Source: Setoptus koraiensis
Lineage: Eukaryota > Animalia > Arthropoda
Direction: 5' to 3'
DNA length: 64,000 nucleotides
Assembly (NCBI GenBank): GCA_048013815.1
Contig: CM106585.1
Coordinates: 10,664,001 to 10,728,000, forward strand
Of the stretch, positions 2,263 to 49,775 are shown piece after piece; the first letter of the stretch is position 1; every line of letters begins with the position of its first letter. The position numbers and the translations under genes are program-made. The notes beneath the pieces were generated by a model. That model ran no database searches, was not told where the DNA came from, and saw only the letters and a list, made by a program, of their open reading frames with translations.

Positions 2263-2649
2263 ATGTTTATTACACAAGCGAGGTCACAGATATTTAAATT
2301 GACCAGATTGAGGGTTGTCGACATCAGTGCCTTTAGAAAGGGGGCCTCATTAGCAACTAAACCGGTTAAGTGTATTCATATTTATAACAAAAATGAATCG
2401 AGACATGGTGGTGTTGGAGACAAGAAGCCAGTCACCATTTTAGGACAGATGAAAAAGGGCTATGTTGTCGGATTTGTGGCAAAACAGCGCACCTTCGTTC
2501 CATACGTTGTAACATGTATTTTCTCTGGTTTTCTCATATATGCATGGACCAAGCGAGATAAATCCCTTGAGGAGAATGGTATATCTGAGATAATACATAA
2601 CTTTAAAAAGAGACTGTATCATATGCTACCATTGAGAGTGACATCTAGT
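2263..2649 (+). CDS. Unknown protein, N-terminal fragment with one hydrophobic segment; truncated by gap
   Basis: 129 stop-free codons from an ATG up to the gap. Basic N-terminus and a hydrophobic stretch FVPYVVTCIFSGFLIYAW. No family recognised. Confidence 0.4.
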
Positions 2650-3149
2650 NNNNNNNNNNNNNNNNNNNNNNNNNNNNNNNNNNNNNNNNNNNNNNNNNNN
2701 NNNNNNNNNNNNNNNNNNNNNNNNNNNNNNNNNNNNNNNNNNNNNNNNNNNNNNNNNNNNNNNNNNNNNNNNNNNNNNNNNNNNNNNNNNNNNNNNNNNN
2801 NNNNNNNNNNNNNNNNNNNNNNNNNNNNNNNNNNNNNNNNNNNNNNNNNNNNNNNNNNNNNNNNNNNNNNNNNNNNNNNNNNNNNNNNNNNNNNNNNNNN
2901 NNNNNNNNNNNNNNNNNNNNNNNNNNNNNNNNNNNNNNNNNNNNNNNNNNNNNNNNNNNNNNNNNNNNNNNNNNNNNNNNNNNNNNNNNNNNNNNNNNNN
3001 NNNNNNNNNNNNNNNNNNNNNNNNNNNNNNNNNNNNNNNNNNNNNNNNNNNNNNNNNNNNNNNNNNNNNNNNNNNNNNNNNNNNNNNNNNNNNNNNNNNN
3101 NNNNNNNNNNNNNNNNNNNNNNNNNNNNNNNNNNNNNNNNNNNNNNNNN
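2650..3149. other. Assembly gap (500 N)
   Basis: Run of exactly 500 N. The true length is unknown and the gap hides the start of the repeat gene. Confidence 0.99.
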
Positions 3150-6100
3150 GCCGTAATAAGTGCTTCCGGCAGAGATTTATCTCGATCGAGAACAGCCAAA
3201 GATGATATTGGCTCGAAGAAGGCCTCAAGATCGACCTCTAGTGATTCTTCGAAAGAAGTCAGCGGATCGAAACCGTCCACTACCGCCGTAGTCAGCGCAT
3301 CTGACGCCGATGTATCCAAATCACATCCTTCGAAAGAGGCCATTTCATCTGAAGCAACCCAGAAACCGGCAACAAGTAGATCTTCGAAGTATATTGACGC
3401 TTCCGAAAAAAGTGGTCGCTCAAAGCAATCTACAATGGCCGTAATAAGTGCTTCCGGCAAAGATTTATCTCGATCGAAAACAGCCAAAGATGATATTGGC
3501 TCGAAGAAGGCCTCAAGATCACCCTCTAGTGCTTCTTTGAAAGAAGTCAGCGGTTCGAAACCGTCAACTACCGCCATTGTGAGTGCCTCTGGCGCCGATG
3601 CTTCCAAAACAAAGCCTTCGAAATCAGATATCACATCGAAGAGTACCTCAAAAGCACCATCAAGTGCTACTTCCAAGGAAGTTAGCGGTTCGAAACCGTC
3701 CACCACCGCCATTGTGAGTGCCTCTGGCGCCGATGCTTCCAAAACAAAGCCTTCGAAAGAGGCCATTTCATCTGAAGCAACCCAGAAACCGGCAACAAGT
3801 AGATCTTCGAAGTATATTGACGCTTCCGAAAAAAGTGGTCGCTCAAAGCAATCTACAATGGCCGTAATAAGTGCTTCCGGCAAAGATTTATCTCGATCGA
3901 AAACAGCCAAAGATGATATTGGCTCGAAGAAGGCCTCAAGATCACCCTCTAGTGCTTCTTTGAAAGAAGTCAGCGGTTCGAAACCGTCCACTACTGCCGT
4001 AGTCAGTGCATCTGGCGCTGATGTATCCAAATCACATCCTTCGAAAGAGGCCATTTCATCTGAAGCAACCCAGAAACCGGCAACAAGTAGATCTTCGAAG
4101 TATATTGACGCTTCCGAAAAAAGTGGTCGCTCAAAGCAATCTACAATGGCCGTAATAAGTGCTTCCGGCAAAGATTTATCTCGATCGAAAACAGCCAAAG
4201 ATGATATTGGCTCGAAGAAAGCCTCAAGATCGACCTCTAGTGATTCTTCGAAAGAAGTCAGCGGATCGAAACCGTCCACTACTGCTGTTGTCAGCGTCTT
4301 TGGGGCAGATGTATCCAAATCACATCCTTCGAAAGAGGCCATTTCATCTGAAGCAACCCAGAAACCTGCAACAAGTAGATCTTCGAAGCATATTGACGCT
4401 TCCGAAAAAAGTGGTCGCTCAAAGCAATCTACAACGGCCGTAATAAGTGCTTCCGGCAAAGATTTATCTCGATCGAAAACAGCCAAAGATGATATTGGCT
4501 CAAAGAAAGCCTCAAGATCGACCTCTAGTGATTCTTCGAAAGAAGTCAGCGGATCGAAACCGTCCACTACTGCCGTAGTCAGCGCATCTGGCGCCGATGC
4601 TTCCAAAACAAAGCCTTCGAAAGAGGCCATTTCATCTGAAGCAACCCAGAAACCGGCAACAAGTAGATCTTCGAAGTATATTGACGCTTCCGAAAAAAGT
4701 GGTCGCTCAAAGCAATCTACAATGGCCGTAATAAGTGCTTCCGGCAAAGATTTATCTCGATCGAAAACAGCCAAAGATGATATTGGCTCGAAGAATGCCT
4801 CAAGATCACTCTCTAGTGCATCTTTGAAAGAAGTCAGCGGTTCGAAACCGTCCACCACCGCCATTGTGAGTGCCTCTGGCGCCGATGCTTCCAAAACAAA
4901 GCCTTCGAAATCAGATATCACATCGAAGAGTACCTCAAAAGCACCATCAAGTGCTACTTCCAAGGAAGATAGCGGTTCGAAACCGTCCACTACTGCTGTT
5001 GTCAGCGTCTTTGGGGCAGATGTATCCAAATCACATCCTTCGAAAGAGGCCATTTCATCTGAAGCAACCCAGAAACCGGCAACAAGTAGATCTTCGAAGC
5101 ATATTGACGCTTCTGATGACATTGCTCGCTCAAAGCGATCTACAACGGCCGTAATAAGTGCTTCCGGCAAAGATTTATCTCGATCGAAAACAGCCAAAGA
5201 TGATATTGGCTCGAAGAAGGCCTCAAGATCACCCTCTAGTGCTTCTTTGAAAGAAGTCAGCGGTTCGAAACCGTCCACTACTGCCGTAGTCAGCGCATCT
5301 GACGCCGATGTTTCCAAATCACATCCTTCAAAAGAGGCCATTTCATCTGAACCAACCCAGAAACCTGCAACAAGTAGATCTTCGAGGCATATTGACGCTT
5401 CCGAAAAAAGTGGTCGCTCAAAGCAATCTACAATGGCCGTAATAAGTGCTTCCGGCAAAGATTTATCTCGATCGAGAACAGCCAAAGATGATATTGGCTC
5501 GAAGAAGGCCTCAAGATCACCCTCTAGTGCTTCTTTGAAAGAAGTCAGCGGTTCGAAACCGTCCACTACTGCCGTAGTCAGCGCATCTGACGCCGATGCT
5601 TCCAAAACAAAGCCTTCGAAATCAGATATCACATCGAAGAGTACCTCAAAAGCACCATCAAGTGCTACTTCCAAGGAAGTTAGCGGTTCGAAACCGTCCA
5701 CTACTGCTGTTGTGAGTGCCTCTGGCGCCGATGCTTCCAAAACAAAGCCTTCGAAAGAGGCCATTTCATCTGAAGCAACCCAGAAACCGGCAACAAGTAG
5801 ATCTTCGAAGCATATTGACGCTTCCGAAAAAAGTGGTCGCTCAAAGCAATCTACAACGGCCGTAATAAGTGCTTCCGGCAAAGATTTATCTCGATCGAAA
5901 ACAGCCAAAGATGATATTGGCTCAAAGAAAGCCTCAAGATCGACCTCTAGTGATTCTTCGAAAGAAGTCAGCGGATCGAAACCGTCCACTACTGCCGTAG
6001 TCAGCGCATCTGACGCCGATGTTTCCAAATCACATCCTTCAAAAGAGGCCATTTCATCTGAAGCAACCCAGAAACCGGCAACGAGTAGATCTTCGAAGCA

Positions 6101-9100
6101 TATTGACGCTTCCGAAAAAAGTGGTCGCTCAAAGCAATCTACAATGGCCGTTATGAGTGCTTCCGACAAAGATTTATCTCGATCGAAAACAGCCAAAGAT
6201 GATATTGGCTCGAAGAAGGCCTCAAGATCACCCTCTAGAGTTTCTTCGAACGAAGTCAGCGGTTCGAAACCGTCCACTACAGCCATTGTGAGTGCCTCTG
6301 GAGCAGATGTATCCAAATCACATCCTTCGAAAGAGGCCATTTCATCTGAAGCAACCCATAAACCTGCAACAAGTAGATCTTCGAAGTATATTGACGCTTC
6401 CGAAAAAAGTGATCGCTCAAAGCAATCTACAATGGCCGTAATAAGTGCTTCCGGCAAAGATTTATCTCGATCGAAAACAGCCAAAGATGATATTGGCTCG
6501 AAGAAAGCCTCAAGATCGACCTCTAGTGATTCTTCGAAAGAAGTCAGCGGATCGAAACCGTCCACTACCGCCGTAGTCAGCGCATCTGACGCCGATGTAT
6601 CCAAATCACATCCTTCGAAAGAGGCCATTTCATCTGAACCAACCCAGAAACCTGCAACAAGTAGATCTTCGAAGCATATTGACGCTTCCGAAAAAAGTGG
6701 TCGCTCAAAGCAATCTACAATGGCCGTAATAAGTGCTTCCGGCAAAGATTTATCTCGATCGAAAACAGCCAAAGATGATATTGGCTCGAAGAAGGCCTCA
6801 AGATCACCCTCTAGTGCATCTTTGAAAGAAGTCAGCGGTTCGAAACCGTCCACCACCGCCATTGTGAGTGCCTCTGGCGCCGATGCTTCCAAAACAAAGC
6901 CTTCGAAGTCAGATATCACATCGAAGAGTACCTCAAAAGCACCATCAAGTGCTACTTCCAAGGAAGTTAGCGGTTCGAAACCGTCCACTACTGCTGTTGT
7001 CAGCGTCTTTGGGGCAGATGTATCCAAATCACATCCTTCGAAAGAGGCCATTTCATCTGAAGCAACCCAGAAACCGGCAACAAGTAGATCTTCGAAGTAT
7101 ATTGACGCTTCCGAAAAAAGTGGTCGCTCAAAGCAATCTACAATGGCCGTAATAAGTGCTTCCGGCAAAGATTTATCTCGATCGAAAACAGCCAAAGATG
7201 ATATTGGCTCGAAGAAGGCCTCAAGATCACCCTCTAGTGCTTCTTTGAAAGAAGTCAGCGGTTCGAAACCGTCAACTACCGCCATTGTGAGTGCCTCTGG
7301 CGCCGATGCTTCCAAATCACATCCTTCGAAAGAGGCCATTTCATCTGAAGCAACCCAGAAACCGGCAACAAGTAGATCTTCGAAGTATATTGACGCTTCC
7401 GAAAAAAGTGGTCGCTCAAAGCAATCTACAACGGCCGTAATAAGTGCTTCCGGCAAAGATTTATCTCGATCGAAAACAGCCAAAGATGATATTGGCTCGA
7501 AGAAGGCCTCAAGATCACCCTCTAGTGCATCTTTGAAAGAAGTCAGCGGTTCGAAACCGTCCACCACCGCCATTGTGAGTGCCTCTGGCGCCGATGCTTC
7601 CAAAACAAAGCCTTCGAAATCAGATATCACATCGAAGAGTACCTCAAAAGCACCATCAAGTGCTACTTCCAAGGAAGTTAGCGGTTCGAAACCGTCCACT
7701 ACTGCCGTAGTCAGCGCATCTGACGCCGATGCTTCCAAAACAAAGCCTTCGAAAGAGGCCATTTCATCTGAAGCAACCCAGAAACCGGCAACAAGTAGAT
7801 CTTCGAAGTATATTGACGCTTCCGAAAAAAGTGGTCGCTCAAAGCAATCTACAATGGCCGTAATAAGTGCTTCCGGCAAAGATTTATCTCGATCGAAAAC
7901 AGCCAAAGATGATATTGGCTCGAAGAGTACCTCAAAAGCACCATCAAGTGCATCTTTGAAAGAAGTCAGCGGTTCGAAACCGTCCACCACCGCCATTGTG
8001 AGTGCCTCTGGCGCCGATGCTTCCAAAACAAAGCCTTCGAAAGAGGCCATTTCATCTGAAGCAACCCAGAAACCGGCAACAAGTAGATCTTCGAAGTATA
8101 TTGACGCTTCCGAAAAAAGTGGTCGCTCAAAGCAATCTACAATGGCCGTAATAAGTGCTTCCGGCAAAGATTTATCTCGATCGAGAACAGCCAAAGATGA
8201 TATTGGCTCGAAGAAGGCCTCAAGATCACCCTCTAGTGCATCTTTGAAAGAAGTCAGCGGTTCGAAACCGTCCACTACTGCTGTTGTCAGCGTCTTTGGG
8301 GCAGATGTATCCAAATCACATCCTTCGAAAGAGGCCATTTCATCTGAAGCAACCCAGAAACCTGCAACAAGTAGATCTTCGAAGCATATTGACGCTTCCG
8401 AAAAAAGTGGTCGCTCAAAGCAATCTACAACGGCCGTAATAAGTGCTTCCGGCAAAGATTTATCTCGATCGAAAACAGCCAAAGATGATATTGGCTCGAA
8501 GAAGGCCTCAAGATCACCCTCTAGTGCTTCTTTGAAAGAAGTCAGCGGTTCGAAACCGTCCACTACCGCCGTAGTCAGCGCATCTGACGCCGATGTATCC
8601 AAATCACATCCTTCGAAAGAGGCCATTTCATCTGAAGCAACCCAGAAACCGGCAACAAGTAGATCTTCGAAGTATATTGACGCTTCCGAAAAAAGTGGTC
8701 GCTCAAAGCAATCTACAATGGCCGTAATAAGTGCTTCCGGCAAAGATTTATCTCGATCGAAAACAGCCAAAGATGATATTGGCTCGAAGAAGGCCTCAAG
8801 ATCACCCTCTAGTGCATCTTTGAAAGAAGTCAGCGGTTCGAAACCGTCCACCACCGCCATTGTGAGTGCCTCTGGCGCCGATGCTTCCAAAACAAAGCCT
8901 TCGAAATCAGATATCACATCGAAGAGTACCTCAAAAGCACCATCAAGTGCTACTTCCAAGGAAGTTAGCGGTTCGAAACCGTCCACTACTGCCGTAGTCA
9001 GCGCATCTGACGCCGATGCTTCCAAAACAAAGCCTTCGAAAGAGGCCATTTCATCTGAAGCAACCCAGAAACCGGCAACAAGTAGATCTTCGAAGTATAT

Positions 9101-12100
9101 TGACGCTTCCGAAAAAAGTGGTCGCTCAAAGCAATCTACAATGGCCGTAATAAGTGCTTCCGGCAAAGATTTATCTCGATCGAGAACAGCCAAAGATGAT
9201 ATTGGCTCGAAGAGTACCTCAAAAGCACCATCAAGTGCATCTTTGAAAGAAGTCAGCGGTTCGAAACCGTCCACCACCGCCATTGTGAGCGCATCTGGCG
9301 CCGATGCTTCCAAAACAAAGCCTTCGAAAGAGGCCATTTCATCTGAAGCAACCCAGAAACCGGCAACAAGTAGATCTTCGAAGTATATTGACGCTTCCGA
9401 AAAAAGTGGTCGCTCAAAGCAATCTACAATGGCCGTAATAAGTGCTTCCGGCAAAGATTTATCTCGATCGAGAACAGCCAAAGATGATATTGGCTCGAAG
9501 AAGGCCTCAAGATCACCCTCTAGTGATTCTTCGAAAGAAGTCAGCGGTTCGAAACCGTCCACTACCGCCGTAGTCAGCGCATCTGACGCCGATGTATCCA
9601 AATCACATCCTTCGAAAGAGGCCATTTCATCTGAACCAACCCAGAAACCTGCAACAAGTAGATCTTCGAAGCATATTGACGCTTCCGAAAAAAGTGGTCG
9701 CTCAAAGCAATCTACAATGGCCGTAATAAGTGCTTCCGGCAAAGATTTATCTCGATCGAGAACAGCCAAAGATGATATTGGCTCGAAGAAAGCCTCAAGA
9801 TCGACCTCTAGTGATTCTTCGAAAGAAGTCAGCGGTTCGAAACCGTCCACCACTGCCGTAGTCAGCGCATCTGACGCCGATGTTTCCAAATCACATCCTT
9901 CGAAAGAGGCCATTTCATCTGAAGCAACCCAGAAACCGGCAACAAGTAGATCTTCGAAGTATATTGACGCTTCCGAAAAAAGTGGTCGCTCAAAGCAATC
10001 TACAATGGCCGTAATAAGTGCTTCCGGCAAAGATTTATCTCGATCGAAAACAGCCAAAGATGATATTGGCTCGAAGAAAGCCTCAAGATCGACCTCTAGT
10101 GATTCTTCGAAAGAAGTCAGCGGATCGAAACCGTCCACTACCGCCGTAGTCAGCGCATCTGACGCCGATGTATCCAAATCACATCCTTCGAAAGAGGCCA
10201 TTTCATCTGAAGCAACCCAGAAACCGGCAACAAGTAGATCTTCGAAGCATATTGACGCTTCCGAAAAAAGTGGTCGCTCAAAGCAATCTACAATGGCCGT
10301 AATAAGTGCTTCCGGCAAAGATTTATCTCGATCGAGAACAGCCAAAGATGATATCGGCTCGAAGAAAGCCTCAAGATCGACCTCGAGTGATTCCTCGAAA
10401 GAAGTCAGCGGTTCGAAACCGTCCACTACCGCCGTAGTCAGCGCTCTGGCGCCGATGTATCCAAATCACATCCTTCGAAAGAGGCCATTTCATCTGAAGC
10501 AACCCAGAAACCGGCAACAAGTAGATCTTCGAAGTATATTGACGCTTCCGAAAAAAGTGGTCGCTCAAAGCAATCTACAATGGCCGTAATAAGTGCTTCC
10601 GGCAAAGATTTATCTCGATCGAAAACAGCCAAAGATGATATTGGCTCGAAGAAAGCCTCAAGATCGACCTCTAGTGATTCTTCGAAAGAAGTCAGCGGTT
10701 CGAAACCGTCCACTACTGCTGTAGTCAGCGCATCTGACGCCGATGTTTCCAAATCACATCCTTCAAAAGAGGCCATTTCATCTGAAGCAACCCAGAAAAG
10801 GTCAACAAGTAGATCTGTGATGCATATTGACGCTTCCGAAAAAAGTGGTCGCTCAAAGCAATCTACAATGGCCGTAATAAGTGCTTCCGGCAAAGATTTA
10901 TCTCGATCGAAAACAGCCAAAGATGATATTGGCTCGAAGAATGCCTCAAGATCACTCTCTAGTGCATCTTTGAAAGAAGTCAGCGGTTCGAAACCGTCCA
11001 CTACTGCCGTAGTCAGCGCATCTGACGCCGATGTTTCCAAATCACATCCTTCAAAAGAGGCCATTTCATCTGAACCAACCCAGAAACCTGCAACAAGTAG
11101 ATCTTCGAGGCATATTGACGCTTCCGAAAAAAGTGGTCGCTCAAAGCAATCTACAATGGCCGTAATAAGTGCTTCCGGCAAAGATTTATCTCGATCGAAA
11201 ACAGCCAAAGATGATATTGGCTCGAAGAAGGCCTCAAGATCACCCTCTAGTGCTTCTTTGAAAGAAGTCAGCGGTTCGAAACCGTCAACTACCGCCATTG
11301 TGAGTGCCTCTGGCGCCGATGCTTCCAAAACAAAGCCTTCGAAGTCAGATATCACATCGAAGAGTACCTCAAAAGCACCATCAAGTGCTACTTCCAAGGA
11401 AGTTAGCGGTTCGAAACCGTCCACTACTGCTGTTGTCAGCGTCTTTGGGGCAGATGTATCCAAATCACATCCTTCGAAAGAGGCCATTTCATCTGAAGCA
11501 ACCCAGAAAAGGTCAACAAGTAGATCTGTGATGCATATCGACGCTTCTGATGACATTGCTCGCTCAAAACGATCTACAATGTCCGTAATGAGTGCTTCCG
11601 GCAAAGATTTATCTCGATCGAGAACAGCCAAAGATGATATTGGCTCGAAGAAAGCCTCAAGATCGACCTCTAGTGATTCTTCGAAAGAAGTCAGCGGTTC
11701 GAGAGCGTCCACCACCGCCATTATGAGCGCCTCTGACGCAGATTTATCCAAATCACATCCTTCGAAAGAGGCCATTTCATCTGAAGCAACCCAGAAAAGG
11801 TCAACAAGTAGATCTGTGATGCATATCGACGCTTCTGATGACATTGCTCGCTCAAAACGATCTACAATGTCCGTAATGAGTGCTTCCGGCAAAGATTTAT
11901 CTCGATCGAAAACAGCCAAAGATGATATTGGCTCGAAGAAAGCCTCAAGATCGACCTCTAGTGATTCTTCGAAAGAAGTCAGCGGATCGAAACCGTCCAC
12001 TACCGCCGTAGTCAGCGCATCTGACGCCGATGTTTCCAAATCACATCCTTCGAAAGAGGCCATTTCATCTGAAGCAACCCAGAAAAGGTCAACAAGTAGA

Positions 12101-13567
12101 TCTGTGATGCATATCGACGCTTCTGATGACATTGCTCGCTCAAAGCAATCTACAATGGCCGTAATAAGTGCTTCCGGCAAAGATTTATCTCGATCGAGAA
12201 CAGCCAAAGATGATATTGGCTCGAAGAAGGCCTCAAGATCGACCTCTAGTGATTCTTCGAAAGAAGTCAGCGGATCGAAACCGTCCACTACTGCTGTTGT
12301 CAGCGTCTTTGGGGCAGATGTATCCAAATCACATCCTTCGAAAGAGGCCATTTCATCTGAAGCAACCCAGAAAAGGTCAACAAGTAGATCTGTGATGCAT
12401 ATCGACGCTTCTGATGACATTGCTCGCTCAAAACGATCTACAATGTCCGTAATGAGTGCTTCCGGCAAAGATTTATCTCGATCGAAAACAGCCAAAGATG
12501 ATATTGGCTCGAAGAAAGCCTCAAGATCGACCTCTAGTGATTCTTCGAAAGAAGTCAGCGGTTCGAGAGCGTCCACCACCGCCATTATGAGCGCCTCTGA
12601 CGCAGATTTATCCAAATCACATCCTTCGAAAGAGGCCATTTCATCTGAACCAACCCAGAAACCTGCAACAAGTAGATCTTCGAAGCATATTGACGCTTCC
12701 GAAAAAAGTGGTCGCTCAAAGCAATCTACAATGGCCGTAATAAGTGCTTCCGGCAAAGATTTATCTCGATCAAAAACAGCCAAAGATGATATTGGCTCGA
12801 AGAAAGCCTCAAGATCGACCTCTAGTGATTCTTCGAAAGAAGTCAGCGGATCGAAACCGTCCACTACCGCCGTAGTCAGCGCATCTGACGCCGATGTTTC
12901 CAAATCACATCCTTCGAAAGAGGCCATTTCATCTGAAGCAACCCAGAAACCGGCAACAAGTAGATCTTCGAAGTATATTGACGCTTCCGAAAAAAGTGGT
13001 CGCTCAAAGCAATCTACAATGGCCGTAATAAGTGCTTCCGGCAAAGATTTATCTCGATCGAAAACAGCCAAAGATGATATTGGCTCGAAGAAAGCCTCAA
13101 GATCGACCTCTAGTGATTCTTCGAAAGAAGTCAGCGGATCGAAACCGTCCACTACCGCCGTAGTCAGCGCATCTGACGCCGATGTATCCAAATCACATCC
13201 TTCGAAAGAGGCCATTTCATCTGAACCAACCCAGAAAAGGTTAACGAGTAGATCTGCGATGCATATTGACGCTTCCGAAAAAAGTGGTCGCTCAAAGCAA
13301 TCTACAATGGCCGTAATAAGTGCTTCCGGCAAAGATTTATCTCGATCGAGAACAGCCAAAGATGATATTGGCTCGAAGAAAGCCTCAAGATTGACCTCTA
13401 GTGATTCTCCGAAAGAGGTCAGCGGTTCGAGAGCGTCCACCACCGCCATTATGAGCGCCTCTGACGCAGATTTATCCAAATCACATCCTTCGAAAGAGGC
13501 CATTTCATCTGAACCAACCCAGAAAAGGTTAACGAGTAGATCTGCGATGCATATCGATGCTTCTGAT
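3150..13567 (+). repeat. Coding tandem array: 33 visible units of 288 nt (96 aa) or 423 nt (141 aa)
   Basis: Unit starts (M/T-AVISAS) at ~3147, 3435, 3858, 4146, 4434, 4722, 5145 ... 13019, 13307. Long units start at 3435, 4722, 5433, 6720, 7431, 8718 and 11156. Confidence 0.97.
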
Positions 13568-14956
13568 GCTATTTCTGATTTTCAGAGGCATGGCGCTTTG
13601 ACTCCCGAAAATGGCTCTGACCAATCGGAAAAATTGCTTGGTAATCTGTTGAATCTCACTTCTTCGCACTCATTCCCGCGTTCTCAGGTTCGTCCTCAGA
13701 TTGGTCACACTGTTCAAGCAGCTACGAATATCACTAATGAAGCTTCCTCACTCGATATCGCGGAAACAACTCGATCCGGTTTGTCTGGCATCGATGCTGT
13801 CGTAAAGAGTTCTCACGATTCTGAATCCCCAGATCATGATCTAGATTTGACCAACGACGCTAACGCAATCTATGGATCAAAAATAAAGGCGCTTAGGCCA
13901 GAAAAATCATCAGCCAGTCGTAGCAACAGTAAATCATCGATGATATCAGTCAGATCGTATGAAAAATCTTATCATAAAGAGAACTCAATTTCGCTTGGAC
14001 TGAATAAGGCATCATCTGAGACAACGAATCAAGCCAGTTCTCGCCTCAGTGGCAAAATTTCTCATTCTGAGGACCCATCAACTGATCCAACTAATGAAAA
14101 GTCTGGTGCTGATTCGAGAGAAAAAAATAGAGGACAAGGCTCTGCTTTGGGCAGGAAGAGCAGGGCTAAGATTTCCAAGTATCTTCCCCTAACTAAATCA
14201 CTCGATGACGCTGACTCAAAACTTGTATTGCCTCCCATCCCAGTGAATATCGGATCTTCTGAGCTGCTTACAGAACCTCATAAGATGCCTATGGCTTCAC
14301 CTGACGCTGCAAATGCTCTTGGAACTTTGGCTTCGTTTGGGTCCAATATGAATCGAATCGAGACCGATGACAAGAGCGAAACAAAACGGGAGACGATATT
14401 GAAATCTTCCAAAGTTGCATATAAATCTTGGAAGTCAGATTTTCCAATAGGGGGCAAGTCTACTTTATTCGAACCTGACAGTCGGATCAGGTCATCAGCT
14501 TCGAATCCGGACACAAATCTTAAAGTGAAGCAATCATCAATTGATAAATTTTCCAAGCTTGCCACTAAATCCCGACAATCACCTTCGGTAACATCATCAG
14601 CTAAAGATGCTGACTTAAATGGACTTCCTGAATCTTCAATCAAATCTACCCTATCTGAGACTATAACCAATATCGAAGCTTTGCCAAAGGTATCTGACGT
14701 GGACAAGAGATCAGCCGCGAATACTTACCAATCTGAATCTTCAAGGCTCTTCATCGGATCATCAAGTTCGCCGACGCTGTTGAAACAACAATCTCAGATG
14801 CCGGTGTCGGAAAACGAGAAGCCGGAACAGAGAGAGAGAATGGAGGGAAAATCAGTCAAATCATCTGTTCTTGATTCTGAATCATGGAAATCACTATTAT
14901 CTGGTCGCAGTAATGTTGCACGAAGGAAGAAATCTAAAACAAAAAATAAAGACTGA
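3150..14956 (+). CDS. Giant Ser/Lys/Ala/Thr-rich tandem-repeat protein (>3,900 aa), 5' end in gap, one apparent 1-nt deletion at 10444/10445
   Basis: ORFs 3435..10589 and 10580..14956 encode the same repeat and join if one A is restored (gcgc[a]tctggc). The frame continues through ~460 non-repetitive Ser-rich residues to a stop, ending RRKKSKTKNKD. Length variation among units is always a multiple of 3. Confidence 0.8.
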
Positions 14957-16759: not shown

Positions 16760-17275
16760 GTCAGCGGTTCGAAACCGTCCACCACCGCCATTGTGAGTGC
16801 CTCTGACGCAGATTTATCCAAATCACATCCTTCGAAAGAGGCCATTTCATCTGAAGCAACCCAGAAACCGGCAACAAGTAGATCTTCGAAGTATATTGAC
16901 GCTTCCGAAAAAAGTGGTCGCTCAAAGCAATCTACAATGGCCGTAATAAGTGCTTCCGGCAAAGATTTATCTCGATCGAGAACAGCCAAAGATGATATTG
17001 GCTCGAAGAGAGCCTCAAGATCAACCTCTAGTGATTCTTCGAAAAAAGTCAGCGGTTCGAAACCGTCCACCATCGCCATTGTGAGCGCTTCGGGCGCCGA
17101 TGTATCCAAATCACATCATTCCAAAGAGGCCATTTCGATTTCATCAGGTTTTCGAAGAAAGTGAATGCTAAAAACAATCTACAATGGCTGTAATCAGTGC
17201 TTCTGGCAAAGATTTATCTCGATCGAAATCAGCCAAGATGATATTGGCTCGAAGGATGCCTCAAGATCACCCTCT
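16760..17275 (+). pseudogene. Detached, degenerate fragment (~1.5 units) of the giant coding repeat
   Basis: Same nucleotide unit as the array, with foreign sequence near 17137-17172, a stop at 17162-17164 and a later frameshift. No start or signal context. Confidence 0.8.
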
Positions 17276-17669
17276 GAGGCTTCAACCGTTGTATGATCAG
17301 AAAAACGGGTTGGTATCATTTCGACGACAGGCTACATTCAACGGCAGTTCCGAACAAGGAAAAAGGTACGATTCGACGATATTTAGTTCACCGACAACAA
17401 CTTCAACGAAATTTTAAATAACGAATATATAACGAACAACGACAATGACGATATGAATCCGGAAACATTAACTTTCGAGGCCAATAATCATAAATTAAAT
17501 CGAGCAGACTGGTGCAATCAATATGAACGATTGATAATTGAATGTGTTCTTGACATGGAAATGTACTGGGTGGTGCTGCATAAGCGCTGCTGCATTATAT
17601 TACACCAATATTATTACCAGTAATATATTAATTTAATGAGTAATAAAATAATACTTACAGAAAATAAAA

Positions 17670-18238: not shown

Positions 18239-20337
18239 TCATTCAATAGGTGAAATAAAGAACAAAGTAATAACCGCACCCACTATTAGCAAGTGTGACA
18301 CAGCAACAACGAGATCTAGATAAGGACAATTCAAACTTGATACCGATTCCTTCTTTCCATTCTTTTTCCTTCCCTCGATTTTTATCCCGCTTGGTATGGC
18401 CAGCGTTGTGATACTGTTTGCTTTGACTGTGATTCGCCCCACTAACATCGTATCATCTGAAAATACATTCACCAATTTAGCTTCGGGGGCCTTGTTCAAT
18501 ATAACAACCGAATAATGTGACTTATCTGGCCTCTCAGCTGCTATGACTTTAACCAGAGGGTCGTCATTGTCTGGCTCGCTGCTAGTTGAATTGAATAATT
18601 CACTGTCGAATATTCGTGCATCTGGTTCAAAGAATCGTGAAAAATGCGCCAACACATAATACATGGGATTCTTGTAATAAACTTGCTTGTCCTCATCGAA
18701 CAAAATCGGCGCATCAACTGAGTGAGGAGGGAAAAACAAGCGCATCAATTTATAAATTATTGCGTTAATAACTATTGATTGATCAGTTAAGATAGTCCGG
18801 GTGTAGAAACGCCATGACATACCGTAGTTGCCAACCCAATTTGGGCCTCCTTCCATGTCCAGCACCAAATTCCAGTCCACCCAACCTGCGTCGTATCTTT
18901 TTAGGGTCTACATACATTGCAGGACACACCGACAGTAGAATAATAATAAATAGATAAATAATAATCATTAGCAATCAGGCAGTGAGACGAACGAGTGAGT
19001 TATTGTTACGGCACTATGCTTACCTCGATTATGTCGTCGGCGTACTCCACGCCATTCTGCCATCGCCCAGGATTAGGTGTGCCTATGTTGCATGCCTCGG
19101 AGGATAAAATTATGGCTGAATCTGGTAGTAGCTTTTTAATTTCTTCCAACGGTTCGTAACCCCCGCCTGGTGTTTCACGCGAATACCAATGAATTGCAAC
19201 ACCGGACACGTATTGCATGGCTTCAGTGTCGTCTGTCATTGATTTCACGTACTCTTCAACAAACTTCGTGCTGTCATCATGAATCAACAGATGAAGTTTG
19301 TCTTTTCCAAAGCCATTCTCGGCCAACCTGGGTCCCAAATTGTCCCTGACATAGTCGCGCAATTCATTTGCTTCGAACAACATTGCATTCCAAAAAATCG
19401 AATCAAGAAAGGCAGCTCTTGGTTCATTCTGAGTGGTGATGCCCCAAAAGTCAATTCCGTGCGATTGGTATTCCTTCAAAAACCTAACGTGATATCTAGC
19501 GTAAGCATCGTAGTAATCTTGCGAGCTATTTCCCTTCAGTTTACCCTTGAGCAAACTATCACTTTCTTTCATCCAACCCGGCGAAGACCAAGCTGAACCA
19601 AACAAATTCAGTTTCTGCCCGCATTGAGCACAGTTCATCACAATATCCTGCGCCTGTTTAATAATCGGTATCTTCAATTCGATGTCCTCAGGTTGAAGCT
19701 TGAATCTAGTAAAATCTAAATCCTCTTTCGCACCATCGTTGGTATCGTTAAGGTCTAAGTAGGAATAGTTACGCGATGAAAAGTCACTACCGCCAATTGG
19801 CACTCGACCTATGGTGTATCTTAAACCATTACTACCAAAATAATCCTCCAATGCGAATTTTCTCATCTCTGCAGTCATATGCTGCAGCTGAAGTGTGGCG
19901 GCATCAGTGAACGCACCTCCGAAACCAATAATCTTTTGCCTGGTTCTCTCAGGGTACAGACGAATCGTTAGTTCTTCCAAAGAATCGGCAGATTCACTAT
20001 TTGATGTTGTGGGAGAGTCATCAGTGTCATTTATTCCGATAAGTTTCATGACAAAACGTGCCCCACTCTTGTCCGTCTCAACAGCCAGTATTTCATTTTC
20101 GCTTGGCCAATTGAATTCAATTTTATCGCAATAGGTCTGATTGCAAACGCATACGATATCAAATTCATCTAACTCAAAAGTATGCTTGGCACATCCTTGT
20201 GATTTAACTTCACCCACGTGGACTGTGGCAAAATATTCGTTTGTTGTGGTGTATGTTACACCATAAATGACGATGAGCAGGGGTACCGAGAAAGAGAATG
20301 AGCATGGAAATAAGTACAAATCAAACGATGTAATCAT
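18239..20337 (-). CDS. GBA: Glucosylceramidase (GH30) with C-terminal hydrophobic tail; exons 20337-19024, 18907-18823, 18717-18239
   Basis: Motifs IVCVCNQTYCD, QKIIGFGGAFTDAA, RVPIGGSDFS, SAWSSPGWMK, acid/base TTQNEP, nucleophile SSEAC, GWVDWNLVLDMEGGPNWVGNY|VDAPI and YKNPMYYVLAHFSRF. Two canonical introns (116 and 105 nt) restore colinearity with known GBA. Start codon (20337) is tentative. Confidence 0.93.
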
Positions 20338-20941
20338 GATAGCTGACAAGTTTCGAGGTATGAGGGACGCTTGTGAAACACTCACGAAATAGAAGTAAAT
20401 ACAAAGATATCAACACTTTAATTCCTGTGGCTAAATTTTCTTGACGACCAACGGCTGTTGTTTTGCACTTTTTGGTTTGTTCAAAACTTCCTGCCATTTC
20501 TATCGAAAGGTAGTCTTCGGAAAACAAGAAATCGGTATCTAGTTTTAGCTGTTCTTATCTGCCTGTCGTTGCTGCTTCACTTTTGATGACGGTTCGTATT
20601 GACTCCATCTAAATGAAAATTACAACTTTGAAAGTATCACGAAATGCTGTGCTCATGTTTCTATGATCATAACTTTATCTGCACGATAATGCGTGATAGA
20701 ATTAACTGCTTCGACCCATTTGAATAGTTGATTTTTGTTTCCATGTGTCACCTTTGTGAACGCCTCATGGGACTAGCTGTTGTTCATACGTTGTATAATC
20801 CGAGCTTAAACTCAACCACTCCCAAAGACTTTTCCGGATTTATACTTTGCTCTGCAATAAAATCTTCCCCTCCATCTGCACTGTGCGACATGAGGGAATT
20901 AAACCATCACTCCCTGTACATTCGATATGGATTTGTTTTTG

Positions 20942-21441
20942 NNNNNNNNNNNNNNNNNNNNNNNNNNNNNNNNNNNNNNNNNNNNNNNNNNNNNNNNNNN
21001 NNNNNNNNNNNNNNNNNNNNNNNNNNNNNNNNNNNNNNNNNNNNNNNNNNNNNNNNNNNNNNNNNNNNNNNNNNNNNNNNNNNNNNNNNNNNNNNNNNNN
21101 NNNNNNNNNNNNNNNNNNNNNNNNNNNNNNNNNNNNNNNNNNNNNNNNNNNNNNNNNNNNNNNNNNNNNNNNNNNNNNNNNNNNNNNNNNNNNNNNNNNN
21201 NNNNNNNNNNNNNNNNNNNNNNNNNNNNNNNNNNNNNNNNNNNNNNNNNNNNNNNNNNNNNNNNNNNNNNNNNNNNNNNNNNNNNNNNNNNNNNNNNNNN
21301 NNNNNNNNNNNNNNNNNNNNNNNNNNNNNNNNNNNNNNNNNNNNNNNNNNNNNNNNNNNNNNNNNNNNNNNNNNNNNNNNNNNNNNNNNNNNNNNNNNNN
21401 NNNNNNNNNNNNNNNNNNNNNNNNNNNNNNNNNNNNNNNNN
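20942..21441. other. Assembly gap (500 N)
   Basis: Run of exactly 500 N between the divergent GBA and PLD3-like genes. Confidence 0.99.
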
Positions 21442-22184
21442 GAGATGATAAGGATGCAGACATCATATATGGCCCCAGGATATGATTACCTAGTCGTTTG
21501 AAAGTATCGTAGAACGAATAGAATAAACGAAAAACACTGATGAGACGCCAGAATACAGATTCAGACTTATACGCCTTTTGGCACATATTCTCCATTGAAA
21601 ATCCTGACCATTTCGCGCAGTATTTCACGCAGAAGTGCCGATGAGGAAATAGGCGATAAGTTGAAAGAATTTGTCTGCAAAGAACGCAAGAATCTTGAAA
21701 TCGGCTCCAGAGATGAACAATTCGCAGATCAGGTTTCATTCGGACTCCTTGGAGTCGCTTCAAAACGGATTTTGAATGTTTTTTTGGTCTCCAGAAGGGC
21801 TTCGGTACATCGGAATGAAGTTGTCGATGTTTTAATTTGTATCGTTCAACGATTTTGTGCATAGTCCAACAAAGCCGTTTCTGATGGAAATGCTGAACAG
21901 CTTATTGCTGATTAGGTCCTTTTACAGACGTCACACAGAAAAGCGAAGTATCAGCATTTTCATTTCTTACGTATTGCACATTATTGAAGCGGAATGTTAG
22001 ACTTGTGAACAAACAGGTTATAAATAGTGTCGACATCGAGACTGAGCGATCATAGATACTTCGTATGCCATTCCTGAATTTGAGTTGTCTATATTGACTT
22101 TTTAAATCTGGGATTTCATTTGGTTGAAGCTAAAATTCTAACAATACCGCATAATATCTATATTGTCGCAATTATAAGAATAGA

Positions 22185-23570
22185 ATGAAAAGATATTATC
22201 TTATTATTACAGCTCTGCTATCAATAGTGCTGGTTAATGGCCAACCAACTATTGATGAGTGTGAACTGGATATTGTGGAGACTATTCCAAATGGAATGAT
22301 TGCACATGAACTTAACAATACAATTGCTCTGGAGCCTTTTGAGGCGAACATCCTGGACACTACACAAGTTTATCTCAAGTTGATAGCAAACGCCAAAAGA
22401 AGCATCAAAATTGCGAGTTTTTATTGGTCTTTAACAGAAAACGATGTGATTGCACAAGTGAATAAAGACTTTAAAGACCCTGATAATAGTCAACAGGTTG
22501 GACAGAGAGTATTGGATAGCCTCAAGATTGCCGCGAAAGAACGCGATGTAGCCATTGAAATAGTCACCGACAATTCTATGGCAAAACCAATTAGCTTTCG
22601 TAGTGATTTGATGGAAATAGAAAAATTCGCCACGGTTCATTATCTCAATGCGACTCGTTTATTCGGTCAGGGCATATTACACACAAAATTCATTTTGGTA
22701 GATGACGAGGAATTTTATTTGGGCTCGGCCAACATGGATTGGCGTTCGTTGACTCAAGTAAAAGAGATAGGATTTTATCTTCATGAGTGTCCAAAATTAT
22801 CAAATGATTTGGACAGAATTTTTGCGGGATACAAGCGCCTAGCAACAAGCGTCAATAATTTGGCTGGTCCGGCAACAAACAACCTTATAGAGGAAAATGA
22901 AAGGCACATTTTGAGTGGATTAGTTTCAGAGGTGGCTCACTCTGAATATAGTCAGTTTCGACCGCTCATAGTAAAATTAAACAATAAATTGGCAAAGGTG
23001 CATTTAGCGGCGGCACCCGAATATTTGGCAGGCGTAGGTCGCTCTGTAGATCTGAACGCGATTCGATTGAGTATAAAGAAAGCGCGAGAATTCGTTTACC
23101 TGTCGGCAATGGATTACAGTGAATTCTCTTATCCTAACTTCCAAGAGTGGCCAGCCTTGTCCGAAGTGCTTGAGGAGGCAAAAGAACGTGGTGTTGATGT
23201 TAAAATATTGACAGATAGCCACAAAATATTCAACAAGCAGGGCTATAAATTGAAGAAAGCAGGAATAGATTTTCGTGGATTCATTGTGCCAAAATGCAAT
23301 GAATATCAAAATAACTTGCCAAACTCTCGAGTGTATCATGGCAAATACATTGTCACCGATCAAACTGTCATCATAACCACACAAAATCTGACACCCAATT
23401 ACTTCAATGCAACACTTGGTGTTAGTCTAGTGATAGATGACGAGCCGGATTTAACTCAAAAGATGAAACATTTGTTTGAACGAGATTACATGAGCTCTTA
23501 CGCCTCAGTTTTTGTTCCTAAACCTTGGAAACCTCGATCTCCTGATGTAGCTAAAGATAAATCCACATGA
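22185..23570 (+). CDS. PLD3: Phospholipase D family member 3/4-like enzyme, intronless, with signal peptide
   Basis: Motifs LDIVETIP, SIKIASFYWSL, HKD1 GILHTKFILVDDEEFYLGSANMDWRSLTQVKE and HKD2 RVYHGKYIVTDQTVIITTQN. N-terminal MKRYYLIITALLSIVLVNG is signal-like. Confidence 0.92.
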   Translation: MKRYYLIITALLSIVLVNGQPTIDECELDIVETIPNGMIAHELNNTIALEPFEANILDTTQVYLKLIANAKRSIKIASFYWSLTENDVIAQVNKDFKDPDNSQQVGQRVLDSLKIAAKERDVAIEIVTDNSMAKPISFRSDLMEIEKFATVHYLNATRLFGQGILHTKFILVDDEEFYLGSANMDWRSLTQVKEIGFYLHECPKLSNDLDRIFAGYKRLATSVNNLAGPATNNLIEENERHILSGLVSEVAHSEYSQFRPLIVKLNNKLAKVHLAAAPEYLAGVGRSVDLNAIRLSIKKAREFVYLSAMDYSEFSYPNFQEWPALSEVLEEAKERGVDVKILTDSHKIFNKQGYKLKKAGIDFRGFIVPKCNEYQNNLPNSRVYHGKYIVTDQTVIITTQNLTPNYFNATLGVSLVIDDEPDLTQKMKHLFERDYMSSYASVFVPKPWKPRSPDVAKDKST

Positions 23571-35079: not shown

Positions 35080-38000
35080 TTACTTAAGTCGTTGAGTCAA
35101 TGAGGCTAAAGCTACTCCCATTGCCTGGACTGCGTTAAATGGGTACTGAAAATCAAGAGTATACGCACGATTATCAATGCGTCCAAATTGCATAGCCTAA
35201 GGTTTCGAGGGATTGTTTGAATAGTAAAAAGAATGACGAGAGGTTAGAGAAGAACCTAAGACAGTGAGCCGCTCCAATTCCAGTTATGCTAAGTTGTACT
35301 TACCAATTGACCTTGGTATTCGATTTGAAAATTTTTTGCTGATTCCTGAGTGACACGTCCACCAAAATCTAATTGATAAACTTGACTGAAGGCATTCCAC
35401 ACAGGTGGTTTATTTAGCAGTATGTGCTCATTCAGATACTTATCGATTTTCGGACCTTGTGACTCATCATGTACACACTTGGCTGATTGCGCTGCCTTTT
35501 TATTTATAGACTCTGATGAGTTAATTTTAGAGGTAGCATTCAAATTTTGTAAATTTTCTTTCGAGCGTAGATTAGGTCGTCGGACGCAATTAATTTCTCC
35601 GCTGCTTGTGCAATCAAAATAGGTGAACCTGTTGAACGTGGATATTAAGAGTTAGAAAACTTTCTATAAATATCTTTAAATAAATACATATTGCATCTAG
35701 TCACTGTATATTGATATTACCTTCGTTGTATAGCTTTGGTGACTAGCTTTGTTGTGGATTGGCAACGACGAGGACGCGCTGTATCCCAATCCAAGTTGTT
35801 TTCTTTGTCTTCAGAATTGAAATTGTGTCCTAAAGATCCATCAACCATGTTATTTATACCATCTTTCGAGTAAGATCCCGATAAATCTTGTAGTCTTTCT
35901 TCAAGACCTGCATTCTCATAACAGCCTCGCATTGAGCGTTTCTTCTTGAGTGGAGTGCAAGGTTGACTCTGCGTCATCAGGTGCCCAGAATCTTCTTTTC
36001 CTCTATATTTTTCATTGGTATCTCGAAGCAATGGCTGATGAAGATCATAATCTGCACATGATCCAAATGAAGATCCGATATTGAGGCTCATGGCTGATTT
36101 TTTGAATTGTTCGCGAAGTTTTTTCGTGAATTTCCTCTTGGGGGGTTGAGGTGGGGTTGATCGCATAGAGCAGTCGTCGACTTGATCCGACCAAACGTGA
36201 CAAGGTTCCTCTGTTGTCATAGAAGTGAGCGGTGAACCTTCTTTTGCCTTGATTGCATGAACTTTTGGCTGAACGTCTTCACCAATTGATCTTTTTGGAG
36301 AGTTGTATTGGCTTGTATTCTTATCTTTAGAAACATTCGCACAAGTACGTCTTCTTGGTCTATGCACTGGTGTTTGTGGCACAGGGGGTAATATTGTGCT
36401 ATCTTCCCTGGGAGAATCTAAATGATTCAGCACGACAGTACTGCTATCTTCCTCCGGTTTTATTGAAGTATCTACCAGCAAATCATCATCTTTTGCTGCT
36501 TTAGAAGATAGATCAACAATCATCTTGGTAATGGCACTTATAGACAACAAGTGACCACTTGTTTCCGTAGGAGTCCCTGTTGAATTAAACGATGCTACGT
36601 TATTGGTAGATCCTTTGTAACTTGCCGATGGGATTTGGTCCAAATCATCCCGTTTACTACAAGTAGGATATAGCTCATTGTTTGAGGAGCATCTAGACGA
36701 CATCTTCATAGATATTGATGTTGTCGACCTCTCTTTCTCATCCTTGTCATTTTCACCCACAGATTTTTTGTCCATATAGAGAGTGAGAATGTCATCGTCG
36801 TCATCTACGAAATTATAGCAGCCTGATTGTCTGTCGAATTTTGATTTGTAGTCGTTGATTTGATGGTTGTCTAATGCAAGCTTCTTTGATGGGGATTCTG
36901 CACAGGTCGAATCTAGATTTTGTTGCTGGGTAATTCCAGGCGAGGGCCTTTTCTTGCTCGACTTAACTCGATTATCCACCACTTTCATATGGTCTATTGT
37001 GGAGGATAGTTTAGACGATGTCGCTCGAGATCGATTATCGTAACTATAGATATTCTCGCAGGATATTGCCGAAGACGGCAAATGTTTATCTCGTCGGTGA
37101 GTTCGTCGTCTATGTCTAACAGAGGAAAGTGTGAGGCTATTTGTGTCCCCGACAAAGATTTGTTGATCTGAATCATTATTTACAGGTCTATGAGTGCAGC
37201 TCATCGGAGCGATACGGAGGTTATCTCCTACTTCCAAAAATACAGTACTTGATGACTGATAACCGACACTAGTTGAGGCTGAATCATCTACATCGCAGGA
37301 AAAATCTTTATCATGATCATAATGATTACTTGATGATGCTTTCTCCAATTGACTACTGTCATCTATGTACTTCTTTTCGTGGGCATCGGTCAAGCCAAAA
37401 CAGTTACTGCAAACGGTTTCTAGATCCTTAATGGTTATACAAACCTGTCTAGGCTGAAGGTGCAATAGACTTGTCTTGTAGACCATTGTGGCAATATTTT
37501 CTGGCAACGGATCGCATCCAATAATTTTGAATTTAGTGCCCCAGAAATTGGACTTAACTCTGGCCAATATTCTCTGTTCAGGCAGGTTATCGTAGGCGTG
37601 ATAATGATGTAGATATTGTAGATGTCGTTTAAACGCGTGACGTAATTCATGTGCAGAAGGTGTTTCATCAGCAATGGCAGCCCATTGGGGTGTGGCGTTA
37701 TCACAATCAAGTAAATCATATGCATAATTGTCGCGAGCCATCTGTGTATCGAGGGATAAATCTAGGTAACAAGAGAGAGTATCGCGCTGATTGCCATTCA
37801 TAAATCTAACCAATGATTGAGATTGACTACTGTAGTCGTCTCTGTTTGGCTCAGCTGAGTTTAAATCAGGCAGGACTTCATGTGACAAATTATCACCAGA
37901 ATAGGCCTCCTGTAATGATGGTGTTGCAGATTTGGATCTCAATCGCGATTTAAGATTGTTGAATCTTGTCTTGGTGCAACCATCTCTCAATTGCTGTTGT

Positions 38001-48369: not shown

Positions 48370-48446
<77 letters not shown>

Positions 48447-49578: not shown

Positions 49579-49744
49579 TCGCTGCTATTTCGCCGTGCTT
49601 TCGCCGTGATTTTGCCGCGCTTTTGCCCTGATTTTACCCTGACCACATTATCGCCGTCCTGTCGCTGTTATGGGCCGATATTGTCGTCATTGCAACTATG
49701 CCGAGACTATCATTTTTATTATCATTATCATCATCATGAGAGCA

Positions 49745-49775
<31 letters not shown>

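Follow-up and report, generated by a model that had tools for sequence, protein, structure and literature searches.

The window analyzed here, 64,000 nucleotides from Setoptus koraiensis (assembly GCA_048013815.1, contig CM106585.1, positions 10,664,001 to 10,728,000), contains a 10.4 kb tandem array on the plus strand (window positions 3150-13567; 10,418 bp) which reads straight into 462 unique codons. Taken as a whole, the locus is tentatively read as a real, single-copy plus-strand gene for a structural protein that is disordered and specific to its lineage, with an extracellular material as the likeliest role. The product would be a giant, basic, and intrinsically disordered protein of at least ~3,935 residues that lacks Cys and whose 5' end is hidden in a scaffold gap.

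Organization of the Repeat Array

Segmentation divided the array into 73 modules: 33 of type A (45 aa), 33 of type B (51 aa), and seven of type C (45 aa). The corresponding lengths in DNA, obtained from TRF and segmentation, are 135 nt for A and C and 153 nt for B, which bears out the module sizes and the A-B or A-C-B units of a preliminary description made from the letters alone. The computed consensus peptides were also found to be nearly letter-for-letter the same as those given there. The modules are joined into 26 AB units (288 bp) and seven ACB units (423 bp), and a higher-order unit, [ACB]ABABAB[ACB]AB, of 1998 bp occurs three times in the array. The modules had previously been called interchangeable; the three types were recovered, but they follow a rather fixed A-(C)-B grammar inside the higher-order repeat. 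The array starts at position 3150, one residue into an A module, and at its other end the last B module blends gradually into the unique sequence. As assembled, the first part (3150-10444) is read in the frame of base 3150 and the second (10445-13567) in the frame of an ORF at 10580-14956.

All modules have a similar layout, in which small and hydrophobic residues form a start block, [T/M]A[V/I][V/I]SASG.D.S, and are followed by a Lys/Ser-rich, net-positive hydrophilic linker. Homology of A, B, and C is found at the DNA level as well, with 98/129, 96/131, and 89/125 aligned columns identical, in agreement with the common ancestry suggested earlier. Downstream of the array, the unique C-terminal region (13568-14956, plus strand) is an intact ORF of 462 codons and a TGA stop, and the remaining reading frames in this region contain many stops. 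It contains 19.5% Ser, no Cys, and no hydrophobic segment, and ends in a basic cluster of the RRKKSK type, matching the ~460 unique residues with a basic tail that had been reported. An AATAAA motif overlaps the last codons of the gene.

Composition and Predicted Structure

Ser makes up 28.3% of the residues, Lys 13.0%, Ala 11.9%, and Thr 7.7%, while Gly and Pro account for 4.4% and 3.8% of the repeat protein. Not one of the 3,928 residues is Cys, and the net charge is +7 per 100 residues. The repeat also has no Trp and very little Tyr (0.4%) or Phe (0.2%), as the preliminary description had stated. Hydropathy peaks are found at module starts only, and no TM-grade segment was detected (maximum 19-residue hydropathy, 0.7). 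Single-sequence AlphaFold2 modeling gave a mean pLDDT of 44, with 35-40 in the repeat modules, no confident fold, and few short helices, all in the tail. The protein is predicted from this model to be largely disordered, which is consistent with the disorder proposed earlier. Its layout would be that of a block copolymer, in which ~73 weak, beta-prone stickers alternate with hydrophilic linkers on a single chain. Such a chain would presumably be a bulk material and not an enzyme or a ligand.

Comparison with Known Systems

Sericins, the silk glue of Lepidoptera (such as Ser1 and Ser3 of Bombyx mori), form a hydrated adhesive matrix able to set into beta structure. The repeat protein is similar in its ~30% Ser, its hydrophilic and apparently disordered nature, its tandem repeat units, each a few tens of residues long, and its low content of Cys and aromatic residues. 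Its Ser content lies within the 25-40% required of a sericin-like glue, a functional class and not a homology family, and is accompanied by 45-51-residue modules and predicted disorder. However, no sequence similarity to sericins was found by phmmer or word search. Moreover, the repeat protein is basic, whereas sericins are not known to be strongly basic, contain more Gly, Asp/Asn, and Thr, and carry an established signal peptide, with expression in the silk gland.

Among mite proteins, the fibroins of Tetranychus urticae contain 27-39% Ser, and Tetranychidae fibroins in general have more than 50% Gly, Ser, and Ala, GGX and GA/GS dipeptide repeats, fewer than 1,000 residues, and a signal peptide, according to PMC9287230, which cites the Ser values. 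The repeat protein is likewise a mite protein of unusually high Ser content, repetitive and hydrophilic, but it differs in its Gly content, its 13% Lys, and its module length, and shows no detectable similarity. Fibroin/spidroin crystalline motifs (GA, GGX, and poly-Ala runs) are absent from the repeat, which has just a short [AV][VI][VI]SASG block per module. On the C-terminal side, no folded terminal domain of the fibroin/spidroin type was found, the 462 residues having no Pfam match, no relatives, and a pLDDT of 44.

The Balbiani-ring proteins of Chironomus are giant proteins whose largely intron-free genes have hierarchical tandem repeats; they are basic, rich in Lys, Ser, and Pro, and spun or secreted, and conserved cysteines in their repeats cross-link the fiber. 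The present protein resembles them as a giant, basic, Lys/Ser-rich chain with units within higher-order units, but it has no Cys and no homology to them. In barnacle cp-19k, a protein of ~19 kDa without long tandem modules, Ser, Thr, Ala, Gly, Val, and Lys represent about two thirds of the residues. The same six make up 70.1% of the repeat here, a likeness of composition only. As in cp-19k, small-residue blocks alternate with charged blocks, suggesting surface coupling via lysines. Finally, a long Ser/Thr-rich tandem repeat with KPSTT-type clusters resembling O-glycosylation sites recalls mucin PTS regions. Here S+T+P reaches 39.8%, but K+R+D+E is ~28%, and Pro and Gly are so low that they speak against a likeness to mucins or fibroins. 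Mucin flanks (VWD, CK, SEA, and CBM14, searched with Pfam), a TM segment, and a GPI-type C-terminus were all absent on the C-terminal side.

Possible Roles of the Protein

A role as extracellular material is put forward as the leading but tentative interpretation. The preliminary description had weighed a silk, adhesive, or mucin-like secretion against a basic cytoskeletal or nuclear scaffold, with the N-terminus in the gap as the deciding part. The protein would most likely serve as a hydrated glue, silk-matrix, or coat protein outside the cell, in which lysines would provide surface binding and the sticker blocks would allow gelling or setting. The absence of Cys, the basic charge, and the RRKKSK cluster weigh against this, as they suit an intracellular or nuclear protein equally well.

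It is rather unlikely that the gene encodes an intracellular scaffold similar to MAP1B/Futsch or to SR/Nopp140 proteins, in which case a giant basic chain, disordered and open to phosphorylation, would be located in the nucleus, nucleolus, or cytoskeleton. Its Ser/Thr-Lys modules would then serve as a spacer, or else bind nucleic acid or microtubules multivalently under the control of kinases. The lack of Cys across 3,928 residues, the net positive charge, the predicted disorder, and a C-terminal RRKK cluster resembling a nuclear localization signal would all fit such a protein. In addition, neither a signal peptide nor a TM segment nor an extracellular domain was seen in the assembled part; however, the N-terminus lies in the gap, which leaves room for secretion. 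Moreover, Pfam and phmmer revealed no homology to cytoskeletal, nuclear, or RNA-binding domains. Acidic serine clusters and RS dipeptide runs, which mark Nopp140 or SR proteins, were not found when the modules were read directly. MAP1B/Futsch proteins carry a conserved domain at each end of the repeat region; of these two sides, the assembly covers the C-terminal one, which matches no family in either search. Many near-identical units are, in addition, commoner in secreted materials under dosage selection, which counts against a scaffold.

Returning to extracellular material, eriophyoid mites possess an anal secretory apparatus which produces silk or attachment secretions. It is a speculative and improbable proposal that the gene encodes a main structural component of this secretion (used for attachment and, in some species, webbing), with silk or glue having been invented independently at the molecular level. 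In a recent paper on eriophyoid silk, a keyword check turned up neither "silk protein" nor "fibroin" (PMC13027148). If the proposal were true, the secretion would be built from a Cys-free Ser/Lys block copolymer unrelated to spider-mite, spider, or insect fibroins. If expressed and secreted, the protein would define a new sequence family of arthropod biomaterial, with a regular sticker-and-spacer design that is basic, Ser/Lys-rich, and Cys-free, and would be a concrete candidate for the eriophyoid attachment or silk secretion; the animal and its genome would be among the smallest known. As things stand, the gene is one among many lineage-specific low-complexity repeat genes of arthropods.

Coding Potential and Integrity of the Gene

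The array and its extension very likely form a real coding gene on the plus strand. The 89 distinct variants among array copies are distributed over codon positions 1, 2, and 3 as 18, 26, and 45 (chi-square p = 0.0015), and pN/pS among copies ranges from 0.14 to 0.50, although these selection statistics are soft because the copies are not independent. No variant creates a stop codon, versus 3.0 expected (P ~0.05). Length differences among modules are all multiples of three in one frame, except for a 1-bp deletion. Together with the third-position bias of the variation, this points to coding DNA and not satellite. Non-coding satellite DNA was ruled out on the basis of the 18/26/45 codon periodicity, the 135/153-nt modules, and the in-frame junction with the 462-codon ORF.

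Directly upstream of the array, a gap of 500 N (2650-3149) conceals the 5' end of the gene, with its start codon and whatever signal peptide or additional repeats it may have. A second gap of 500 N is located at 20942-21441. Gaps of this size are what 3D-DNA inserts. Inside the array, a 1-bp deletion, the loss of an A, between positions 10444 and 10445 shifts the plus-strand frame within a B module, which reads AGCGC^TCTG where AGCGCATCTG is found in the other B modules. A stop at 10589 closes the frame of base 3150, and the post-deletion frame is open from 10391. The assembly therefore holds two plus ORFs, a 5'-truncated one ending at 10589 and a second at 10580-14956. The residue count is 3,928, with ~7 more at the break, and a total of ~3,935 is reached only with the break read through. 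On that condition the length of more than 3,900 aa claimed in the preliminary description stands, but its single open frame from 3150 to 14956 does not, as the deletion splits the ORF.

Most likely, the frameshift arose as an error in the consensus of an assembly of noisy long reads, or comes from a single haplotype of the pooled DNA; decay of the gene is a less likely cause. A 47-Mb two-chromosome eriophyoid assembly was produced from over 100,000 pooled animals with PacBio CLR reads, Flye, short-read polishing, and 3D-DNA, the scaffolder being named in the paper without a gap size (PMC11920263). The paper also names an assembly of the eriophyoid Aculops lycopersici. If this CLR-based assembly is the source, single-base indels in repeats are expected, and an assembly error at 10444/10445 becomes plausible. 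A consensus error is also plausible because the array is a repeat beyond the reach of short-read polishing. The gene is probably intact in the animal, even though its frame is broken in the assembly. With the array at a contig break and a probable consensus indel within it, the gene will be either divided or left out by automatic annotation.

A decayed partial copy of the array was found on the plus strand at 16760-17283, 1.8 kb downstream of the gene. It consists of the end of an A module, a B, an A, a truncated B, and a frameshifted A. Over its 524 bp, it shows 91% identity to the module consensus and carries four deletions, which amount to two frame-breaking events. Neither this copy nor the antisense ORFs discussed below appeared in the preliminary description.

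That the gene is dead or decaying, or the array an expanded satellite derived from coding sequence, is improbable. The frameshift would then be real, the uniformity of the modules would result from unequal crossing-over alone, and no full-length protein would be made. Such an origin would agree with the broken frame, the position of the array at a contig break, the decayed fragment nearby, and the softness of statistics drawn from non-independent copies. However, the 11.8 kb from 3150 onward has a single break, the one frame-breaking indel in the 10,418 bp of the array, versus two events in the 524-bp stray copy. The third-position-biased variation without a stop in 89 variants and the intact 462-codon tail argue in the same direction, and indels of this type would be expected if the assembly is indeed CLR-based.

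On the minus strand, open frames at 2645-10426 and 10438-13503 have third codon positions in common with the plus frame. They are read here as a by-product of codon make-up and not as a gene. Coding by this strand, which would yield an acidic repeat protein, over 3,600 residues long and rich in Leu, Phe, Glu, Asp, and Ala, is highly improbable: the minus ORFs equal the plus ORFs in length, the third-position signature and codon-usage scores are the same for both strands, and within-array variants are fewer at plus position 1 than at position 2 (18 versus 26), but the ORF starts at 13503 inside the last module with no unique extension, all minus frames are closed upstream of it (15-37 stops across the C-terminal region), and it would have to overlap a 462-codon plus ORF too long for chance. 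Differences between module types fall at plus codon positions 1, 2, and 3 as 27, 16, and 47, with position 2 the most conserved, and pN/pS is lower on the plus than on the minus strand in 7/7 comparisons; these effects are small, and codon-position and pN/pS tests alone are unable to tell the two frames apart because their third positions are common. In addition, when the codons of one ACB unit were shuffled, the antisense frame was stop-free by chance in 23% of cases, and Pfam "hits" on the antisense ORF only added up sub-threshold repeats and had no stretch that passed.

Searches for Relatives and Genomic Neighborhood

No Pfam domain was found in either plus ORF, the unique tail, or the repeat block. 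A phmmer search with 645 residues (two AB units and the tail) against 1.84 billion representatives returned no matches, as did a word-based search with the 1,458-aa ORF, and a metagenome contig scan with the tail gave no confirmed match. Within its own genome, the tail has no paralogue and the repeat is confined to this locus, including the stray copy. The scores of ESM Atlas look-alikes, 0.76-0.80 for the tail and the repeats, were no better than chance. These results agree with the earlier statement that no known family could be recognized. The term "orphan" used at that time is correct in that no relatives were found, but it claims too much. In a calibration with the neighboring PLD3-like gene, no copy from its own genome was recovered, one relative had 67% identity, and the rest had at most 36%. 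Since a conserved neighbor has just one close relative in the same collection, orphan status is weak evidence; the lineage is barely sampled, and a fast-evolving disordered protein would escape detection anyway.

The gene is surrounded by animal genes (PLD3-like, GH30, and WDR35/TULP4-like) on a eukaryotic chromosome, and a bacterial serine-rich repeat adhesin was rejected for this reason. An Rfam scan of positions 1-22000 gave no match. The genome has a small, intron-poor, mite-type character. Upstream of the first gap, an ORF from position 2263 onward was read as mitochondrial ribosomal protein L14, with a sub-threshold Pfam match (E = 0.13).

Module architecture

The Ser/Lys-rich array at 3150-13567 on the plus strand has periods of 288 bp and 423 bp across 3240-13568, with sub-periods of 135 bp (Tandem Repeats Finder). 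Cutting its translation at the recurring [M/T][A/S][V/I][I/V/M]S motif gave 73 modules, namely 33 A (45 aa), 33 B (51 aa), and 7 C (45 aa), whose order is invariably A-B or A-C-B (26 AB and 7 ACB units). The units are arranged three times over as a 1998-bp higher-order repeat, [ACB]ABABAB[ACB]AB, and longer AB runs follow it; self-identity of the array is maximal at lags of 288, 999, 1287, and 1998 bp. Module copies are 85-100% identical to the consensus of their class (class means 94-99%). The A, B, and C consensus modules align at about 71-76% DNA identity and therefore share a common ancestor, as proposed in the preliminary description, whose consensus peptides are essentially the same as those derived from this segmentation. 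The repeat consists of 28.3% Ser, 13.0% Lys, 11.9% Ala, 7.7% Thr, 6.6% Asp, 4.4% Gly, and 3.8% Pro; the reported absence of Cys and Trp and near-absence of aromatics agree with the counts (Cys 0, Trp 0, Tyr plus Phe 0.6%). The roughly 460 unique residues with a basic end that were said to follow the array correspond to a tail of 462 codons at 13568-14956, in frame with the array and closed by a TGA at 14954-14956.

Coding capacity and strand

Among module copies of the same class 89 distinct variants were found, which fall at plus-strand codon positions 1, 2, and 3 in a ratio of 18/26/45 (chi-square p = 0.0015). None of the 89 creates a stop codon, against 3.0 expected (P about 0.05), length differences between modules are multiples of three throughout, and pN/pS among copies is 0.50 for A, 0.48 for B, and 0.14 for C. 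These are signatures of translated sequence, although the non-independence of copies within one array softens them.

The minus strand is also open, at 2645-10426 and 10438-13503. Since the plus and minus frames have third positions in common, the codon-position and pN/pS tests alone cannot pick the strand, and codon usage was of no help in telling the two apart. The coding strand is plus on four grounds. First, the plus frame continues through the 462 codons of unique DNA, where the minus frames have 15-37 stops; the minus ORF starts within the last module. Second, differences between module types, which reflect older divergence, are distributed 27/16/47 over plus positions 1/2/3, with position 2 most conserved, as for a coding frame. 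Third, pN/pS was lower in the plus frame than in the minus frame in all 7 of 7 comparisons. Finally, the same antisense frame was stop-free in 23% of codon shuffles of one ACB unit, so the antisense ORF is an expected by-product.

Frame break and intactness

The B module at 10428 is missing a single base at 10444/10445. The pre-deletion frame ends at a stop at 10589, and a second frame is open from 10391 to 14956. As a result of this 1-bp deletion, the assembly contains two ORFs, one 5'-truncated and 2,479 codons long, the other 1,458 codons long; the frame was left unmended and the pieces were searched separately. The preliminary description gave a length of more than 3,900 aa, and 3,928 residues can indeed be counted outside broken codons; however, no single frame of this size is present, so the figure presupposes read-through of 10444/10445. 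Single-base deletions in near-identical repeats are a typical leftover error of CLR assemblies, which short reads are unable to polish. The Setoptus koraiensis assembly was made with PacBio CLR reads, Flye, NextPolish, and 3D-DNA from more than 100,000 pooled mites, a highly heterozygous source, and was annotated without RNA-seq (PMC11920263). The repeat gene is probably intact in the animal.

A stray, decayed copy of the array (the end of an A, a B, an A, a truncated B, and a frameshifted A) was found at 16760-17283, with 91% identity to the consensus. Its four deletions amount to two frame-breaking events in 524 bp, compared with one frame-breaking indel in the 11.8 kb ORF of the main gene, a contrast which argues that the main array is under maintenance. 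The stray copy sits 1.8 kb downstream of the repeat gene, and a small secreted-peptide-like gene lies in between. This copy, the frame break, and the open minus strand had all been overlooked.

Search for relatives

No Pfam family matched either ORF, the tail, or the repeat block. A phmmer search with two AB units and the tail against 1.84 billion representatives returned no match at E <= 0.001, a word search with the complete 1,458-aa ORF returned none, metagenome contigs yielded no confirmed relatives, and look-alikes in the ESM Atlas had chance-level scores. Within its own genome the tail is without a paralogue, and the repeat is confined to this locus. Pfam, phmmer, the word search, and the metagenome contigs thus had the same outcome as the preliminary description, which recognized no known family; resemblance of the tail or modules to a characterized protein, named there as evidence that would count against its reading, was searched for and none was found.

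This absence was calibrated by a search with a conserved neighbor, an intronless PLD3-like gene at 22185-23570. In the 5.8-billion-cluster collection, the own genome's copy was absent from the results. One close relative, on a 10-kb Logan contig, had 67% identity, and the rest had at most 36%, including Aceria tosichella, Tetranychus urticae, and Oppia nitens; among the named arthropods in this group are several mites at 29-36%. The lineage is therefore hardly sampled, and fast-evolving disordered relatives would be undetectable even if they existed. Hence the label of orphan holds in that databases yield no relative, but it is weak as biology. The repeat gene is real; its kind is familiar, its sequence family is new, and its orphan status is soft.

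Protein properties and proposed role

The locus encodes a giant, repetitive, basic, Cys-free protein which is probably disordered. Net charge of the repeat is +7 per 100 residues, and the chain ends in an RRKK-type basic cluster. The final two modules and the tail, modeled with AlphaFold2 from a single sequence, had a mean pLDDT of 44, with the modules at 35-40 and only a few short helices (55-75) in the tail; built without an alignment, this model is weak evidence. The assembled part contains no transmembrane-grade segment (best 19-residue hydropathy 0.7), and the protein end no GPI-like C-terminus. Hydropathy exceeds 0 only at module starts, in the [T/M]A[V/I][V/I]SAS part of the 12-residue motif [T/M]A[V/I][V/I]SASG.D.S, while the remainder is strongly hydrophilic. 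From these confined peaks, the chain is predicted to be a regular sticker-and-spacer polymer of about 73 short, small-residue, beta-prone blocks with Lys- and Ser-rich linkers between them.

Based on its many near-identical units, sericin-like serine content, and 70% share of Ser/Thr/Ala/Gly/Val/Lys, the protein may act as a bulk material. In these features it resembles hydrated glues and silk matrices, for which sericins, Balbiani-ring proteins, and barnacle cp-19k are the models, a likeness that does not come from alignment. In materials of this type, coupling to surfaces comes from Lys and cohesion from short beta-prone blocks. The anal secretory apparatus of eriophyoids is considered an ancestral feature of the group, and it serves for webbing in some species, with attachment, ballooning, and marking proposed in others (PMC13027148); in a keyword check of that paper, neither "silk protein" nor "fibroin" turned up. 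Spider-mite fibroins are likewise Ser-rich (27-39%), but they are of a Gly/Ala type that carries a signal peptide (PMC9287230) and are unrelated to the repeat protein. An intracellular role, as a scaffold of the nucleus or cytoskeleton, is a fully viable alternative, in keeping with the Cys-free, basic chain, its NLS-like tail, and the absence of a visible secretion signal from the assembled part, the N-terminus being in a 500-N gap. The choice between extracellular and intracellular roles rests on this N-terminus, since the 5' end of the gene lies within the gap at 2650-3149.

Genomic surroundings

The genome comprises 48.8 Mb in two chromosome-size records and has intron-poor genes, in agreement with the published assembly of this eriophyoid, which has 47 Mb in two chromosomes (PMC11920263). 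Elsewhere the window contains ordinary animal genes (Pfam), several of them long uninterrupted ORFs; they encode the PLD3-like phospholipase D, two branch-2 histidine phosphatases, a GH30 glycosidase, and a 1,711-aa WDR35/TULP4-like protein. The last of these, an uninterrupted ORF of 1,711 codons at 35717-40852 (minus strand) with a WDR35/TULP4-type N-terminal beta-propeller, illustrates how intron-poor the genome is. The GH30 gene at 18239-20385 (minus strand) is split over two adjacent ORFs, 19006-20385 and 18239-18880, so that either an intron or a break in the frame must separate them.

A second 500-N scaffold gap lies at 20942-21441, and the long ORFs across 20728-21862 are artefacts of translated N runs. 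Gaps of 500 N are presumably what 3D-DNA inserts; the assembly paper does not give a gap size. A plus-strand ORF at 2263-2649 enters the first gap and, over its first ~63 residues, shows a resemblance to mitochondrial ribosomal protein L14 (PF00238 in Pfam, residues 13-63, sub-threshold at E = 0.13). If real, this ORF also loses its 3' part there, and the gap would therefore conceal more than 500 bp. Further upstream, at 1411-1638, is a CCAACC-rich microsatellite/minisatellite with periods of 13, 26, 39, and 52 bp. Over the last quarter of the window (48000-64000), GC content reaches 51-58%, up from about 40%.
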